Shown here one piece after another: positions 49,499 through 53,647 of a stretch of 64,000 nucleotides of DNA (position 1 is its first letter; each line of letters starts with the position of its first letter). The notes under the pieces were generated by a model. It had not been told where the DNA came from and searched no databases. It saw only the letters and a list, made by a program, of their open reading frames with translations. The DNA lies in the sequence record OR142618.1; one strand, 5' to 3'. Both the position numbers and the translations under genes were made by a program.

Positions 49499-49650
49499 CT
49501 TACTAACGTTGTATATTACGGTAATTCTATAAAATATCTCTATATAATTATAAACGTTTTATGGCATACTACGACTGAACGAAATTGAAAATTAACTAGA
49601 GATTTAATTAGATAAATAATATTGTAAAAATTGTATAGAGGTATACATCA

Positions 49651-50103
49651 ATGAACGATTACACACATTACACAGAGGAAGATTTCATATTTTTAGCATA
49701 TGATTTAAATACTCAGCTTATAAATGATGGATATCCTGACGCTGCTGTAAAATTTATTACTAATCAGTTTATTTTAGAGCATAGACATCCTGACGAAATA
49801 AAACGTTGTATAGGATGTAATTCTAAAATGTACGAAGATGTTATTGCTACTAAGAGAAATTTATCTGGTAAATCGCATTGCAGACATTGCGAATCGAAAC
49901 TTAGTATGTATAAGGAAGTTGTTAAAGAAGTAGCAAATACAACACAAATACTTCGCATACCAGAAAAACATTTAAATTCAGTTAAACGATTAATTAGAAT
50001 ATATAATGAGCAAAACAAAACTAGTGCATATCAGAGTATATTAGTTAAAACAAAGAAACTTAACACAGGAGTTTCTAAAAAGTCAAAAAGAAAGGGACGT
50101 TAA
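49651..50103 (+). CDS. Hypothetical protein with CxxC..CxxC zinc ribbon and basic tail
   Basis: CIGC..CRHC; GAGG RBS; GATAAATA at 49611-18. Confidence 0.8.
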   Translation: MNDYTHYTEEDFIFLAYDLNTQLINDGYPDAAVKFITNQFILEHRHPDEIKRCIGCNSKMYEDVIATKRNLSGKSHCRHCESKLSMYKEVVKEVANTTQILRIPEKHLNSVKRLIRIYNEQNKTSAYQSILVKTKKLNTGVSKKSKRKGR

Positions 50104-50119
50104 TTGTCCCTTTCTTTTT
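50085..50119. terminator. Bidirectional terminator
   Basis: AAAAAGAAAGGGAC/GTCCCTTTCTTTTT. Confidence 0.85.
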
Positions 50120-50339
50120 ATAGGAAGCTTCTACCTGTTTCTGCTTCGATTTTTTGTTTAATAAATTCTCCTAAACGTACCCGCTCTTGATATGATAAAG
50201 ACCAAGCAGTGTGCCAGTCAAATCCATTAATTTTATCACATATTTGGACTATTTCGCCTTCTAATCCCAGTGATTCTTGTTCATATTCTTGTATAACGTT
50301 CCTAATATCATCTGGGGTTCCCGATACTAGGATTCTCTG
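50118..50339 (-). CDS. 73-codon -1-frame extension of 50327..51181 (gp51/GT-like), no start codon of its own
   Basis: Open frame QRILVSG..DWHTAWSLSYQER..SFL*; in-frame TAA just upstream of the slippery heptamer. Confidence 0.75.
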   Translation of the reverse strand, partial: QRILVSGTPDDIRNVIQEYEQESLGLEGEIVQICDKINGFDWHTAWSLSYQERVRLGEFIKQKIEAETGRSFL

Positions 50340-51181
50340 AAAAAACTTACTGGGTTAAAATCTACAGGTACTACAAAACTTTTATTACAGTTGTCGCATA
50401 CTGCATCAAAGTCGCCATTAACTCCTACTTGATTTATTTCTTTTAAAAGACTATCTATTTTATTAACATCTGCTCTATCTATATTTGCTATAAATTCTTT
50501 TATATCAGCTAGTGTCTGAGCAGTATTGTTAACTATGTCTATACCGTTAGTTTCATCTACAATACGAACTATTGTTTTTGCAATTAATTCAAAATTTAAT
50601 GATGACAGTTCATTTATTGTATTAGAAAAGGCAGAAAGTTTTTCTTCATCTGAATACATATCGCTTTGCATTATTCTAATAAATTTTGCTTGTTCTAATG
50701 CAGTTTTTGCAACTGTCATATTATCTGAAAAATCATATGGTCTAATAAATATAGATAGACCGTTATCAAGGTTTACGACGTATTGATCTTCTAAATAAGT
50801 GGACGTATTAATAACATTTAATAAGTCTATTCCATATAAATTTTTATGATTGCAATGCGGGCACGTAGAAGAAATATCTATTGTGTTACCGTATGATGCT
50901 GCTTTTATAGCAACACATATCATATGAATGTCATTAATCAAGAGTTTATTTACATCTTTAATTCCCGGTACACAACTCTTAATTACTTCTTTTAAGCCTT
51001 CACCGTTCACTAATGCATCAGGATTTTTTATTAATACTTCATCTTTTCCTGTCATAGCATATACCCCTAGTTCTCCGGAATCGGTGTATTCTACAACATT
51101 TGATGGATAAAATGAATTTCCGCTGGGCAAACGAATATAAGATTTGAATGTTCTGTAATATTGATGTAATTTGTTGCTCAT
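50327..51181 (-). CDS. Baseplate-hub/tail assembly chaperone (T4 gp26-like)
   Basis: YRTFKSYIRLPSG.FY..VYAMTGKDE..NPDALVNG..CPHC..C..C; next to the tape-measure-like gene. Confidence 0.75.
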   Translation of the reverse strand: MSNKLHQYYRTFKSYIRLPSGNSFYPSNVVEYTDSGELGVYAMTGKDEVLIKNPDALVNGEGLKEVIKSCVPGIKDVNKLLINDIHMICVAIKAASYGNTIDISSTCPHCNHKNLYGIDLLNVINTSTYLEDQYVVNLDNGLSIFIRPYDFSDNMTVAKTALEQAKFIRIMQSDMYSDEEKLSAFSNTINELSSLNFELIAKTIVRIVDETNGIDIVNNTAQTLADIKEFIANIDRADVNKIDSLLKEINQVGVNGDFDAVCDNCNKSFVVPVDFNPVSFFRES

Positions 51182-51200
51182 AGTGTGTATATGCTCTTTT

Positions 51201-51228
51201 GATAAATATGCTATATACCGTATTTATC
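51201..51228. promoter_or_regulatory. Overlapping divergent late promoters (GATAAATA plus 51201-08, minus 51221-28)
   Basis: Two inverted octamers 12 nt apart between divergent tail genes. Confidence 0.65.
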
Positions 51229-51250
51229 ATAGCATTTTATAGAGGTTCTT

Positions 51251-53647
51251 GTGGCAGAAGATATTAGAATTGTTGGCGTTGATCCTAGTGTCCCTGGCTG
51301 GGCTAGAGAAGAAACTCTTAATAAAATAGTATCTGAGTTAAAAAAACTCAATGGATCTAATACAAGAGAAAACGACGAACTAAAAGATGCAGTAGATGAA
51401 CTAGTTAGGGTAACCCGTAGATCTAACGAAGATACATCTAGAACAGATAATAACACTGAAATAAAAGAAGCATTAAATAGATTATCTTCTTCGTTAAAAC
51501 AACAGAAAAAATCTGATAATTCTTTATCTGCAAAGCAAGGGGGAAACAAACCTCCCGTATTGCCGCCTGACAATAAGAAATCTAAATTAGATACATATAC
51601 TATAGGCGCATTTATTACTGCCGTCGGTACTGCTTCAAAGGCAGTAGCAAAATTTACTTTAAGTATGGCATCTTTTGCAGTTGGCGGAAGTATATATGCT
51701 GCATTAAAGCAAGCTGCATCGTCGCAACTTACTTTATCTAGAGATTTATATAAATCAGGTTGGAACTTCGGAACGGTATTAGACGATGCATCTGGTATTA
51801 TTAAATCTACCAACTTAGACGGTATTTCGTATGCCATAAAAGGTTTAGGTATAAATTCATCTGCACTATCTGAAGTATTAAAAGGCAATGAATTAGCAAT
51901 ACAAAAATACGGAATAAAATCGTTTGTAGATTTGTCTTCTAGCTTAAAAAGACAAGGCAATAGCTTAGGTATGTCTTTAAAAGAAACAGCAGATTATGTA
52001 GGAGAATATTTAGAATCTCAACGTTTAATGGGTACATTTGATAAAATGCGCCAAGTAAACATGACTGCCCTTGCATCTAAAGCACTTAAAGATACCCAAG
52101 CATTTGCTACTGCATTAAGAATGTCTACAGAAGACCTTCAGGCAAAAATGAATGAAAGTTTAAAAGATGTAGACTTTCGTGTAGCAATAGAATCAGTTAA
52201 CGCAAATTCTAAAGAAGCCGCCGCCCAAATTTATGCCGCTTTGCCGGAACAATTGCAAACTATGTTTAAGGTAGCTCTTAAAGATACTCCGTCTTTTATG
52301 GCATCCAAAGAATACGCCGATTTAATAAAATCCGGGCAAGGAGAATTAGCTAGACAAATAATTGCAGTATCATCTGGACTGAAATCTGGTAATATAACTA
52401 ACGGTCAGGCAGATGATGCAATGAAACGACTTATAAAATCTACTAGTTTTGCAGAAAGTACAATGCGTAGACTTGCTATGCTAGATGCTCGTGGACTAAT
52501 AGATAGTAATGTTGCTGCTGCTGCGTATGGATTAAAAGACCTTAGAGATAAAATGGATGGTCATTATGAAGGAATCCAAAATACAGAAGCTACAAATTTA
52601 GCAAAAGTCGAAGATGTAAGAAATAGAGCATTAGCTGTATTAGATACGTTTGTATCATCTATAATGAGAGCAGGATTCGAATCTGATGAATTTGCTAAAT
52701 TATTAGATAATGCAAATGAAATGTTAAAAACAATTCATAATACAGCAGAAGACTTAGGTAAACAATTAGGTCCGGAATTATTTAAATTTGTTAACAATGC
52801 TATGGAATATCTAAATGGTTTATTTAGTAAAGATGTAGCAGGAAATATAAATGTAAATTATTCTAAAATAATAGGAGATATTTTAACAAGTTCCGGTGCT
52901 GCTATAGTAGTTGGCGTTCTTGCTATTATGACTACATTTAAAGGTGTTGTTATTTCTTCGTTATCGTCGTGGCTTAAAGGTGCATCAGGACCTATGTCAT
53001 CATTAGGTGGCACCGTAAAAACTATAGCAGGAAGATTAGGGGCATTTGCAGCACTAGCAGTATCGTTTACAAATGGAATAGGTAGATTAAGTCAATCAAT
53101 TTCGGAAGGCGGCGATGCAATAGAATCTGCATTGAATTTTTTATCGGGCGCCGGCGAAGGTATAATAGATCCTGTGTTTAAATCCCTTACATGGGCAGCT
53201 AACAAATTAGGTATAGTATCTGATGAAGCAGCAGATGGATTTAGTAAATACATCAGTGATACTAATTTGCAACAGTTCTTGGGTCTACAAGATATACCTA
53301 TAAAAGTAGAAACTACTAATAAACCTGCATATACACCGCCTGGACCTACTGCTACTAAAACATCTGCATACGGTAAAATAGAAACTCCGAAAGCTCCTGC
53401 TATAATTCCTACAGCTCAGCCAGATGTCGCAGACGCAGCAAAACAAAGTCCTACTCCTGTAGATCCTACTAGCAATATAAAGCCTATAGAAAATACAGGA
53501 ATGAGTTCTCAAGACATGCTAAATAGAAGTACAGATAAACTTATACGTTTACAAGAAGAACAAATACGACAGTTACAAGAGCTTGTAGATATTCAGCGCA
53601 GAGCATTAGCTGCTACTAGAGAAACTGGATTTACAAGAACTAGGTAA
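51251..53647 (+). CDS. Tape-measure-like protein
   Basis: Long helical Ala/Gly/Ser-rich protein with hydrophobic segments, beside the chaperone gene; GTG start. Confidence 0.65.
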   Translation: MAEDIRIVGVDPSVPGWAREETLNKIVSELKKLNGSNTRENDELKDAVDELVRVTRRSNEDTSRTDNNTEIKEALNRLSSSLKQQKKSDNSLSAKQGGNKPPVLPPDNKKSKLDTYTIGAFITAVGTASKAVAKFTLSMASFAVGGSIYAALKQAASSQLTLSRDLYKSGWNFGTVLDDASGIIKSTNLDGISYAIKGLGINSSALSEVLKGNELAIQKYGIKSFVDLSSSLKRQGNSLGMSLKETADYVGEYLESQRLMGTFDKMRQVNMTALASKALKDTQAFATALRMSTEDLQAKMNESLKDVDFRVAIESVNANSKEAAAQIYAALPEQLQTMFKVALKDTPSFMASKEYADLIKSGQGELARQIIAVSSGLKSGNITNGQADDAMKRLIKSTSFAESTMRRLAMLDARGLIDSNVAAAAYGLKDLRDKMDGHYEGIQNTEATNLAKVEDVRNRALAVLDTFVSSIMRAGFESDEFAKLLDNANEMLKTIHNTAEDLGKQLGPELFKFVNNAMEYLNGLFSKDVAGNINVNYSKIIGDILTSSGAAIVVGVLAIMTTFKGVVISSLSSWLKGASGPMSSLGGTVKTIAGRLGAFAALAVSFTNGIGRLSQSISEGGDAIESALNFLSGAGEGIIDPVFKSLTWAANKLGIVSDEAADGFSKYISDTNLQQFLGLQDIPIKVETTNKPAYTPPGPTATKTSAYGKIETPKAPAIIPTAQPDVADAAKQSPTPVDPTSNIKPIENTGMSSQDMLNRSTDKLIRLQEEQIRQLQELVDIQRRALAATRETGFTRTR

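Follow-up and report, generated by a model that had tools for sequence, protein, structure and literature searches.

A probable programmed -1 ribosomal frameshift at the 3' end of the gp26-like gene of a PA5oct-like jumbo phage

The stretch of DNA analysed here, called the window throughout, is 64,000 nucleotides (nt) of sequence record OR142618.1, and our subject is a gene on its minus strand that encodes a protein of 284 amino acids (aa) with the PF12322 domain. The gene ends in the slippery heptamer T TTT TTC. The heptamer, the stop codon that follows it and the -1 frame behind it are conserved in other phages. On the strength of the sequences, we consider it very probable (about 0.88) that a programmed -1 ribosomal frameshift yields two proteins from this one gene, a short form of 284 aa and a long form of 354 aa.

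Positions 49500-52000 of the window match Pseudomonas phage Callisto at 100% identity and ten further jumbo phages of the PA5oct group (Wroclawvirus) at 98.8-99.4%; the source of the window is a PA5oct-like jumbo phage of Pseudomonas aeruginosa. The 284-aa protein matched Pfam PF12322 with an E value of 2.9e-25 and 89.7 bits (cut-off 24.5) over profile positions 16-219, and phrog_150 with an E value of 3.7e-23. The PF12322 match reaches residue 282, just where the Phe-Phe codons of the heptamer lie. Judged by these profile matches, the short form is the equivalent of T4 gp26. PA5oct-group records label the open reading frame (ORF) 'baseplate hub' or hypothetical, and none of them annotates a joined coding sequence for this gene.

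Slip site, reading frames and stem-loop

On the minus strand, the 3' end of the 284-aa ORF reads AGT TTT TTC AGA GAA TCC TAG. The features of the site, with lengths in base pairs (bp) where paired, are the following.

50327-51181, minus strand: short-form 0-frame ORF, 284 aa, with the PF12322 T4_baseplate domain and two CxxC pairs
50355-50357, minus strand: TAA closing the -1 frame upstream, four codons before the heptamer
50339-50345, minus strand: slippery heptamer T TTT TTC, Phe-Phe codons 280-281, in X XXY YYZ phase
50327-50329, minus strand: 0-frame stop TAG, three codons past the heptamer
50300-50332, minus strand: predicted stimulatory stem-loop, a 10-bp outer stem (50332-50323 with 50309-50300) and an inner 3-bp GGG/CCC stem
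50118-50339, minus strand: -1 frame extension, 73 codons and the TAA at 50120-50118, with C50339 read twice

An earlier sequence-only reading of this DNA had proposed a programmed -1 frameshift that joins a gp26-like chaperone to a gp51-like extension, and its description of the site proved accurate. The heptamer lies at 50345-39 in the correct phase at the end of the 284-aa ORF, the -1 frame runs for 73 codons to the TAA at 50120-18, and another TAA stands just upstream of the heptamer. Where it had noted that no start codon lies near the 5' end of this frame, we found no ATG, GTG or TTG anywhere in the 73 codons of the window. Because the -1 frame is closed by the TAA at 50357-50355, ribosomes can enter that frame only at the slip site. 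The predicted frameshift product consists of residues 1-281 followed by the 73 residues of the extension; the sum of 354 aa and the junction peptide, both computed from the sequence, agree with the fusion of about 354 aa that had been predicted. The -1 frame is absent from the ORF lists of the window. An empirical control based on the open lengths of the -1 frame after all window ORFs was useless, because downstream genes inflate the values.

The 9-bp stem that had been described downstream of the heptamer is real, and RNAfold adds one pair to make it 10 bp, with a spacer of 6 nt between heptamer and stem. The folding energy is -13.8 kcal/mol (z = -2.63), and none of 200 dinucleotide shuffles folded as well. 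In the closest relative outside the PA5oct group, locus L090 (56% identity), all 10 pairs of the window stem are kept, with one compensatory and two wobble changes; this covariation compares two sequences, the window and L090, and carries no statistical weight. Relatives whose heptamer is A AAT TTT form a clade with a 13-bp stem that starts 5 nt past the heptamer, in which 83% of the cells are paired (23-58% with the partner slid) and double changes occur at five pairs. RNAalifold recovered only the outer stem in this clade, and the full stem was counted by hand. Across 67 distinct orthologous sites, the 70 nt past the heptamer fold better than shuffles, with a mean z of -1.9. No Shine-Dalgarno-like stimulator is visible upstream at the window site, no Rfam family was found at the slip site, and the main text of Sharma et al. 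2014 states no explicit efficiency for U UUU UUC.

Conservation of the site and of the extension

A tblastn search with the 284-aa protein found 86 phages outside the PA5oct group with less than 60% identity, all of them jumbo phages. A profile scan of IMG/VR gave 80 loci with 31-48% identity, and 80 of the 80 carry an in-phase slippery heptamer at the same codon: A AAT TTT in 43, T TTT TTC in 31 and T TTT TTT in 6. All three variants satisfy X XXY YYZ. The heptamer type thus changes while the X XXY YYZ pattern stays, which suggests that selection favours slippage itself and not the Phe-Phe that is encoded. In these loci the 0-frame stop follows 1-6 codons past the heptamer, and the -1 extension is 73-91 codons long where the contig is complete.

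The GenBank jumbo phages Atu_ph07, XaC1, CBB, Munch, GAP32 and Vibrio phage 2.275.O have the gene end in ..TTT TTC at a conserved ..F-D-P-x-x-F-F C-terminus. In these six the 0-frame stop comes 1-11 codons further on (up to 11 in XaC1 and Munch), and the -1 frame opens 2-5 codons before the heptamer and runs through a separately called small ORF. The same arrangement in 121Q, RaK2 and XacN1 brings the GenBank jumbo phages to nine. L090 has A AAT TTT TTC and a homologous 73-aa extension; its site (L090:2334-2343) holds two overlapping slippery heptamers in tandem, A AAT TTT and T TTT TTC, both in phase. In relatives generally, the open stretch of the -1 frame mostly begins just 2-6 codons ahead of the site, and the extension is 60-91 aa long. 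With jumbo phages, cyanophages and Aeh1 taken together, about 170 loci from other phages show this architecture, which therefore exceeds chance. The orthologue check that the sequence-only reading had called for thus gave conservation of heptamer, 0-frame stop, -1 frame and extension, with Cygsa01 and the phage LR756508 as the exceptions, and it supports the programmed-frameshift reading.

No in-frame fusion with the extension occurs among 96 protein clusters related to the 284-aa form (156-303 aa, one unrelated chimera aside). One candidate, P0097 (361 aa), was rejected as such a fusion: it joins a gp26-like N-terminal half to a hydrophobic region on a 1.3-kb contig. Its source is locus L092 (ENA contig k141_28048, 1281 bp), and the hydrophobic part resembles multi-pass membrane segments, so the 361-aa protein may be an assembly chimera or a different architecture.

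RNA polymerase, rather than the ribosome, could in principle slip on the T6 run, giving some mRNAs with one extra U or two fewer, and the site is indeed a homopolymer run, T6 here and T7 in six relatives. Efficient transcriptional slippage, however, usually needs runs of about 8 or more. The 43 relatives with A AAT TTT followed by one T have a run of only 5, which is a canonical tandem-slip site and a poor polymerase substrate, and the stem-loop kept 5-7 nt downstream has the geometry of ribosomal -1 frameshifting. We consider polymerase slippage very unlikely.

The extension itself is under coding constraint. The 73 residues of the window align over their full length with 42 extensions at 18-33% identity, and their AlphaFold model shows three helices with a predicted local distance difference test (pLDDT) score of 90.7. 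Within the PA5oct group the extension protein is 100% identical, and all four sites that vary in the DNA (50148, 50190, 50199 and 50223; Cassandra and PA5oct) are third positions of the -1 frame and synonymous. Residue conservation begins directly after the slip, with the motif F-F-R/Q-x-x-L-L..P-E-E-I. When the extension alone was used as query, tblastn matched the PA5oct group only, and a sequence search of the PDB with the extension profile returned nothing below an E value of 0.09.

These data also bear on the idea that the site is an artefact or a product of decay, whether through an indel introduced at the T run by sequencing, a frameshift mutation of recent origin or the chance openness of an untranslated 3' region. 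Homopolymer runs are error-prone, and the -1 frame was missed by ORF lists; the sequence-only reading had itself raised the indel concern. Eleven independently sequenced PA5oct-group genomes nevertheless have the T run in common, every distant orthologue has the same architecture with none fused in frame, and the extension is conserved in its amino acids, varies only synonymously and has a confidently predicted fold. Artefact or decay is already contradicted by these observations and has next to no chance of being right.

The downstream frame might instead be a separate small gene, translated from a non-canonical start or by termination-reinitiation and unfused to the PF12322 protein. Annotators call an ORF of its own in XaC1, CBB, Munch, GAP32, Vibrio phage 2.275.O, 121Q and the cyanophages, and two homologues without the heptamer do have their own ATG. 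In the uncultured 484-kb phage LR756508 (L187:1420-1650) the extension homologue starts in the +1 frame nine codons before the stop, and in Cygsa01 (L099:1209-1382) it starts at a TAATG overlap. In the window, however, the -1 frame offers no ATG, GTG or TTG. In the relatives the first such codon varies from codon 4 to 47, most often 38, and the conserved junction motif right after the heptamer precedes it. Independent initiation would not select for a heptamer kept in about 170 loci as three slippery variants, and T4 gp51 has the extension domain fused in frame. A separate gene therefore seems quite unlikely to us, and programmed frameshifting remains the reading that we follow below.

Cyanophages, Aeh1 and the T4 gp26/gp51 pair

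Two cyanophages, S-SSM7 and S-RIM8, and Aeromonas phage Aeh1 all have an in-phase T TTT TTC at the end of gp26. The -1 frame of the two cyanophages leads into an ORF annotated as gp51, and a further 80 of 80 cyanophage-type loci have the same site and -1 continuation, or 82 of 82 with S-SSM7 and S-RIM8. The ORFs labelled 'gp51 baseplate hub assembly catalyst' (45-63 aa) start at an internal Met of this frame (L093:1393-1584, L094:1432-1569 and L100-L179). They lie directly after gp26, behind the same T TTT TTC as in the window; unlike the extension of the window, they are annotated as free-standing genes. By their position and frame, these small gp51 ORFs look like frameshift extensions of gp26 rather than free-standing genes. 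Aeh1 (L095:1390-1580) has, behind its T TTT TTC, a -1 extension of 58 aa that lacks annotation and carries the C-terminal motif of gp51.

T4 gp26 consists of PF12322 alone (215.6 bits), like the short form. T4 gp51 (249 aa) has a PF12322 domain in residues 1-201 (E 3.9e-52, 177.5 bits), followed by about 48 C-terminal residues with matches to phrog_634 and to the final 50 positions of phrog_150. Residues 210-245 of T4 gp51 are matched by the cyanophage extension (hhalign E 8.8e-5), which also matches phrog_634; at the level of sequence profiles, its homology to the T4 gp51 C-terminus is solid. The jumbo extension profile matches the cyanophage extensions (hhalign P 5.4e-4) and T4-type gp51 C-termini (P 3.2e-4, probability 39%) weakly, each in the same register. 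T4-type gp51 carries the junction motif F-K-L-L-x-N-P-D-E-I, so that its tail has in common with the extensions a motif of F, K/R, LL and then P-D/E-D/E-I, together with a later M/L-P/S-x-x-E/D-R motif. The cyanophage extension differs from that of the window in being shorter (60-66 aa) and without the P-E-E-I junction motif. No direct match was found between the extension of the window and phrog_634 (T4 gp51 residues ~196-249). Comparison of the extension profile with the whole T4 gp51 sequence was negative (hhalign probability 1%), a result superseded by the tests with C-terminal profiles. We regard homology between the jumbo extension and the gp51 C-terminus as probable, not proven. The gp51-like character that the sequence-only reading had given the extension therefore holds with a refinement, as T4 gp51 is itself a PF12322 domain plus the extension and the jumbo alignment is weak; the proposed comparison with gp51 failed against the whole protein and gave a weak match to the C-terminal profiles.

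In scans of whole records, T4 proved to have two PF12322 genes, and Aeh1, S-SSM7, PA5oct and Cygsa01 a single one each. The pattern is complementary: Aeh1, S-SSM7 and PA5oct have one PF12322 gene and the heptamer, whereas T4 has two such genes and no heptamer. The two T4 genes are paralogous and divergently transcribed, and neither has a slippery site; gene 26 ends in ...TTC TTT GAG..., with an overlap between its stop and the start of gene 25. Phages with a single PF12322 gene would thus frameshift where the two-gene T4-type phages do not, which supports the view of the 354-aa product as the gp51 equivalent. In a maximum-likelihood tree (rooted at the midpoint for drawing only), T4-type gp26 and gp51 group together in a clade (support 97/94) with Aeh1 as its sister (95/92), and the cyanophage and jumbo genes fall outside this clade. 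According to the tree, the gp26/gp51 duplication took place within Straboviridae once the Aeh1 lineage had split off. Most simply, frameshifting would be the older of the two states, and a pair of duplicated genes would have taken its place in T4-type phages.

T4 gp26 and gp51 are hub assembly chaperones, and gp51 is essential, is not in the particle and acts by an unknown mechanism (Leiman et al. 2010, PMC3004832). The gp51 of cyanophages and vibriophages was reported to lack the first ~200 residues, being about 20% of the length of T4 gp51 (T4-GC 12), and gp51 was reported as 'missing' in Aeh1, with no mention of frameshifting (Sullivan et al. 2010, PMC3037559). GenBank record AM101 labels gp26 and gp51 both as tape-measure assembly chaperones. 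In a search of the full-text literature, with subscription journals outside its scope, we found no description of a frameshift in gp26 or gp51 genes.

Genomic surroundings and working model

Two further features flank the gene; the second is marked as detected by electrospray ionization tandem mass spectrometry (ESI-MS/MS).

50084-50120, minus strand: terminator-like hairpin with a T run, 15 pairs
51251-53647, plus strand: divergent virion protein, candidate tape measure, 798 aa, marked ESI-MS/MS in PA5oct

The hairpin, of a kind for which 0.3 sites are expected in shuffles, starts at the stop of the -1 frame and not at the 0-frame stop. Its placement therefore means that the transcription unit includes 210 nt past the 0-frame stop. 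A comparable hairpin follows the extension in L090. In the window it separates convergent genes, the extension on the minus strand and the ORF at 49651-50103 on the plus strand, with T and A runs on both sides, and is probably a bidirectional terminator. A sigma-70-like promoter match (10/12) at 50192-50221 on the minus strand, inside the extension, is probably due to chance, because the region has fewer such matches than shuffles.

The 798-aa protein has no Pfam or PHROG match. Language-model neighbours place it near tape-measure clusters with a feature score of 0.94, which is a lead only, and for RaK2 ORF088 the annotation says 'similar to ... tail tape measure protein'; we treat it as a candidate tape measure on weak grounds. 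Presumably, 798 aa would fit a tail of ~130 nm at the residue-to-tail-length ratio of T4. The divergent pairing with a virion protein of 720-800 aa is kept in XaC1, CBB, GAP32, 121Q, RaK2, L090 and L091. The putative chaperone of PA5oct, gp336, has no ESI-MS/MS note, unlike its structural neighbours, which fits a protein absent from the virion.

Our working model is of the G/GT type. Most ribosomes would stop at the TAG at 50329-50327 and release the 284-aa PF12322 protein, the putative counterpart of T4 gp26. In a fraction of them, the stem-loop that lies 6 nt further on would cause a pause at U UUU UUC, both tRNA-Phe would slip back by one base, and translation would proceed for 73 codons in the -1 frame. 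The sequences show the signal, its conservation and the coding constraint on the extension; the slip itself and the ratio of the two forms are what we infer. The resulting 354-aa long form, the proposed counterpart of T4 gp51, would consist of the common N-terminal domain and a small three-helix C-terminal domain, which may supply an additional contact. By analogy with lambda G/GT and with T4 genetics, both forms may act together as non-virion chaperones for the central hub of the tail and for the tape measure.

Several observations weigh against this interpretation. In CBB the homologue bears the label 'structural protein', at odds with a chaperone that stays out of the virion. In lambda the chaperone gene lies between those for tube and tape measure, a position that the gene of the window does not have. 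A single relative, L090, provides the covariation for the stem of the window. By sequence, the jumbo extension is linked only weakly to the gp51 C-terminus (probability 30-39%), and the link is partly positional. Finally, Cygsa01 and LR756508 start the extension separately, and the domain can therefore work unfused.

A conserved -1 frameshift is reportedly a feature of tail assembly chaperone genes such as lambda gpG/gpGT (Xu, Hendrix and Duda 2004), and P2 E/E+E' is a frameshift of the same kind. The site described here is probably a further case. In both lambda and the window, slippage on X XXY YYZ close to where the short ORF ends gives, or would give, a short form and a C-terminally extended form, both presumed to be tail chaperones outside the virion, and the architecture is conserved while the sequences diverge. 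The two systems differ in that the PF12322 protein has ~280 aa and two CxxC pairs, versus ~140 aa for gpG, that the extension here is short (60-91 aa), and that the gene is divergent from the candidate tape measure. The link to lambda G/GT that the sequence-only reading had drawn thus stands for the strategy of short and extended forms, but not for the position of the gene. E. coli dnaX, where a -1 slip on a heptamer with a downstream stem-loop gives gamma and tau, likewise makes two products with a common N-terminus. There, however, the shifted frame stops at once, so that the frameshift product is the shorter one, and an upstream Shine-Dalgarno-like stimulator is used.

The AlphaFold model of the PF12322 domain has a pLDDT of 90.9. 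Foldseek and VIA searches gave no clear fold match for either this model or that of the extension, and the structural matches of the PF12322 model are mostly due to its residues 147-205, a helical hairpin. The HK97 tail assembly chaperone (2ob9_A) is the only re-aligned structural match that is covered almost end to end (102 of 107 residues), with Z 6.3 and a root-mean-square deviation of 4.8 A, values in the chance range, and we take it as a lead only. Searches for homology to gpG-like chaperones gave a Foldseek E value of 1.1 and E values of only 0.011 and 0.3 with PHROG 'tail assembly chaperone' families.

A broader scenario is more speculative, and we hold it to be possible but doubtful. 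The -1 frameshift might be ancestral for both hub/tape-measure chaperones across the T4 superfamily (jumbo phages of the Rak2/PA5oct type, cyanophages and the Aeh1 type), with T4 26/51 a frameshift resolved by duplication and PF12322 a remote homologue of gpG-type chaperones, as 2ob9 of HK97 hints. If this were true, the G/GT strategy would be universal among long-tailed phages, and T4 would no longer be an exception.

For the phages at hand, the proposed frameshift would give a conserved tail gene, annotated as a single 'baseplate hub' ORF in jumbo phages of the PA5oct, Rak2 and Atu_ph07 types, an expression mechanism and a second product. It would also correct annotation, in that small 'gp51' or 'hypothetical' ORFs downstream of gp26 would be C-terminal extensions and not free-standing genes. 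The roles of T4 gp26 and gp51 in hub assembly are still unclear (PMC3004832), and the frameshift offers a testable model in which gp26 would be the short and gp51 the long partner in a pair of chaperones resembling G/GT.

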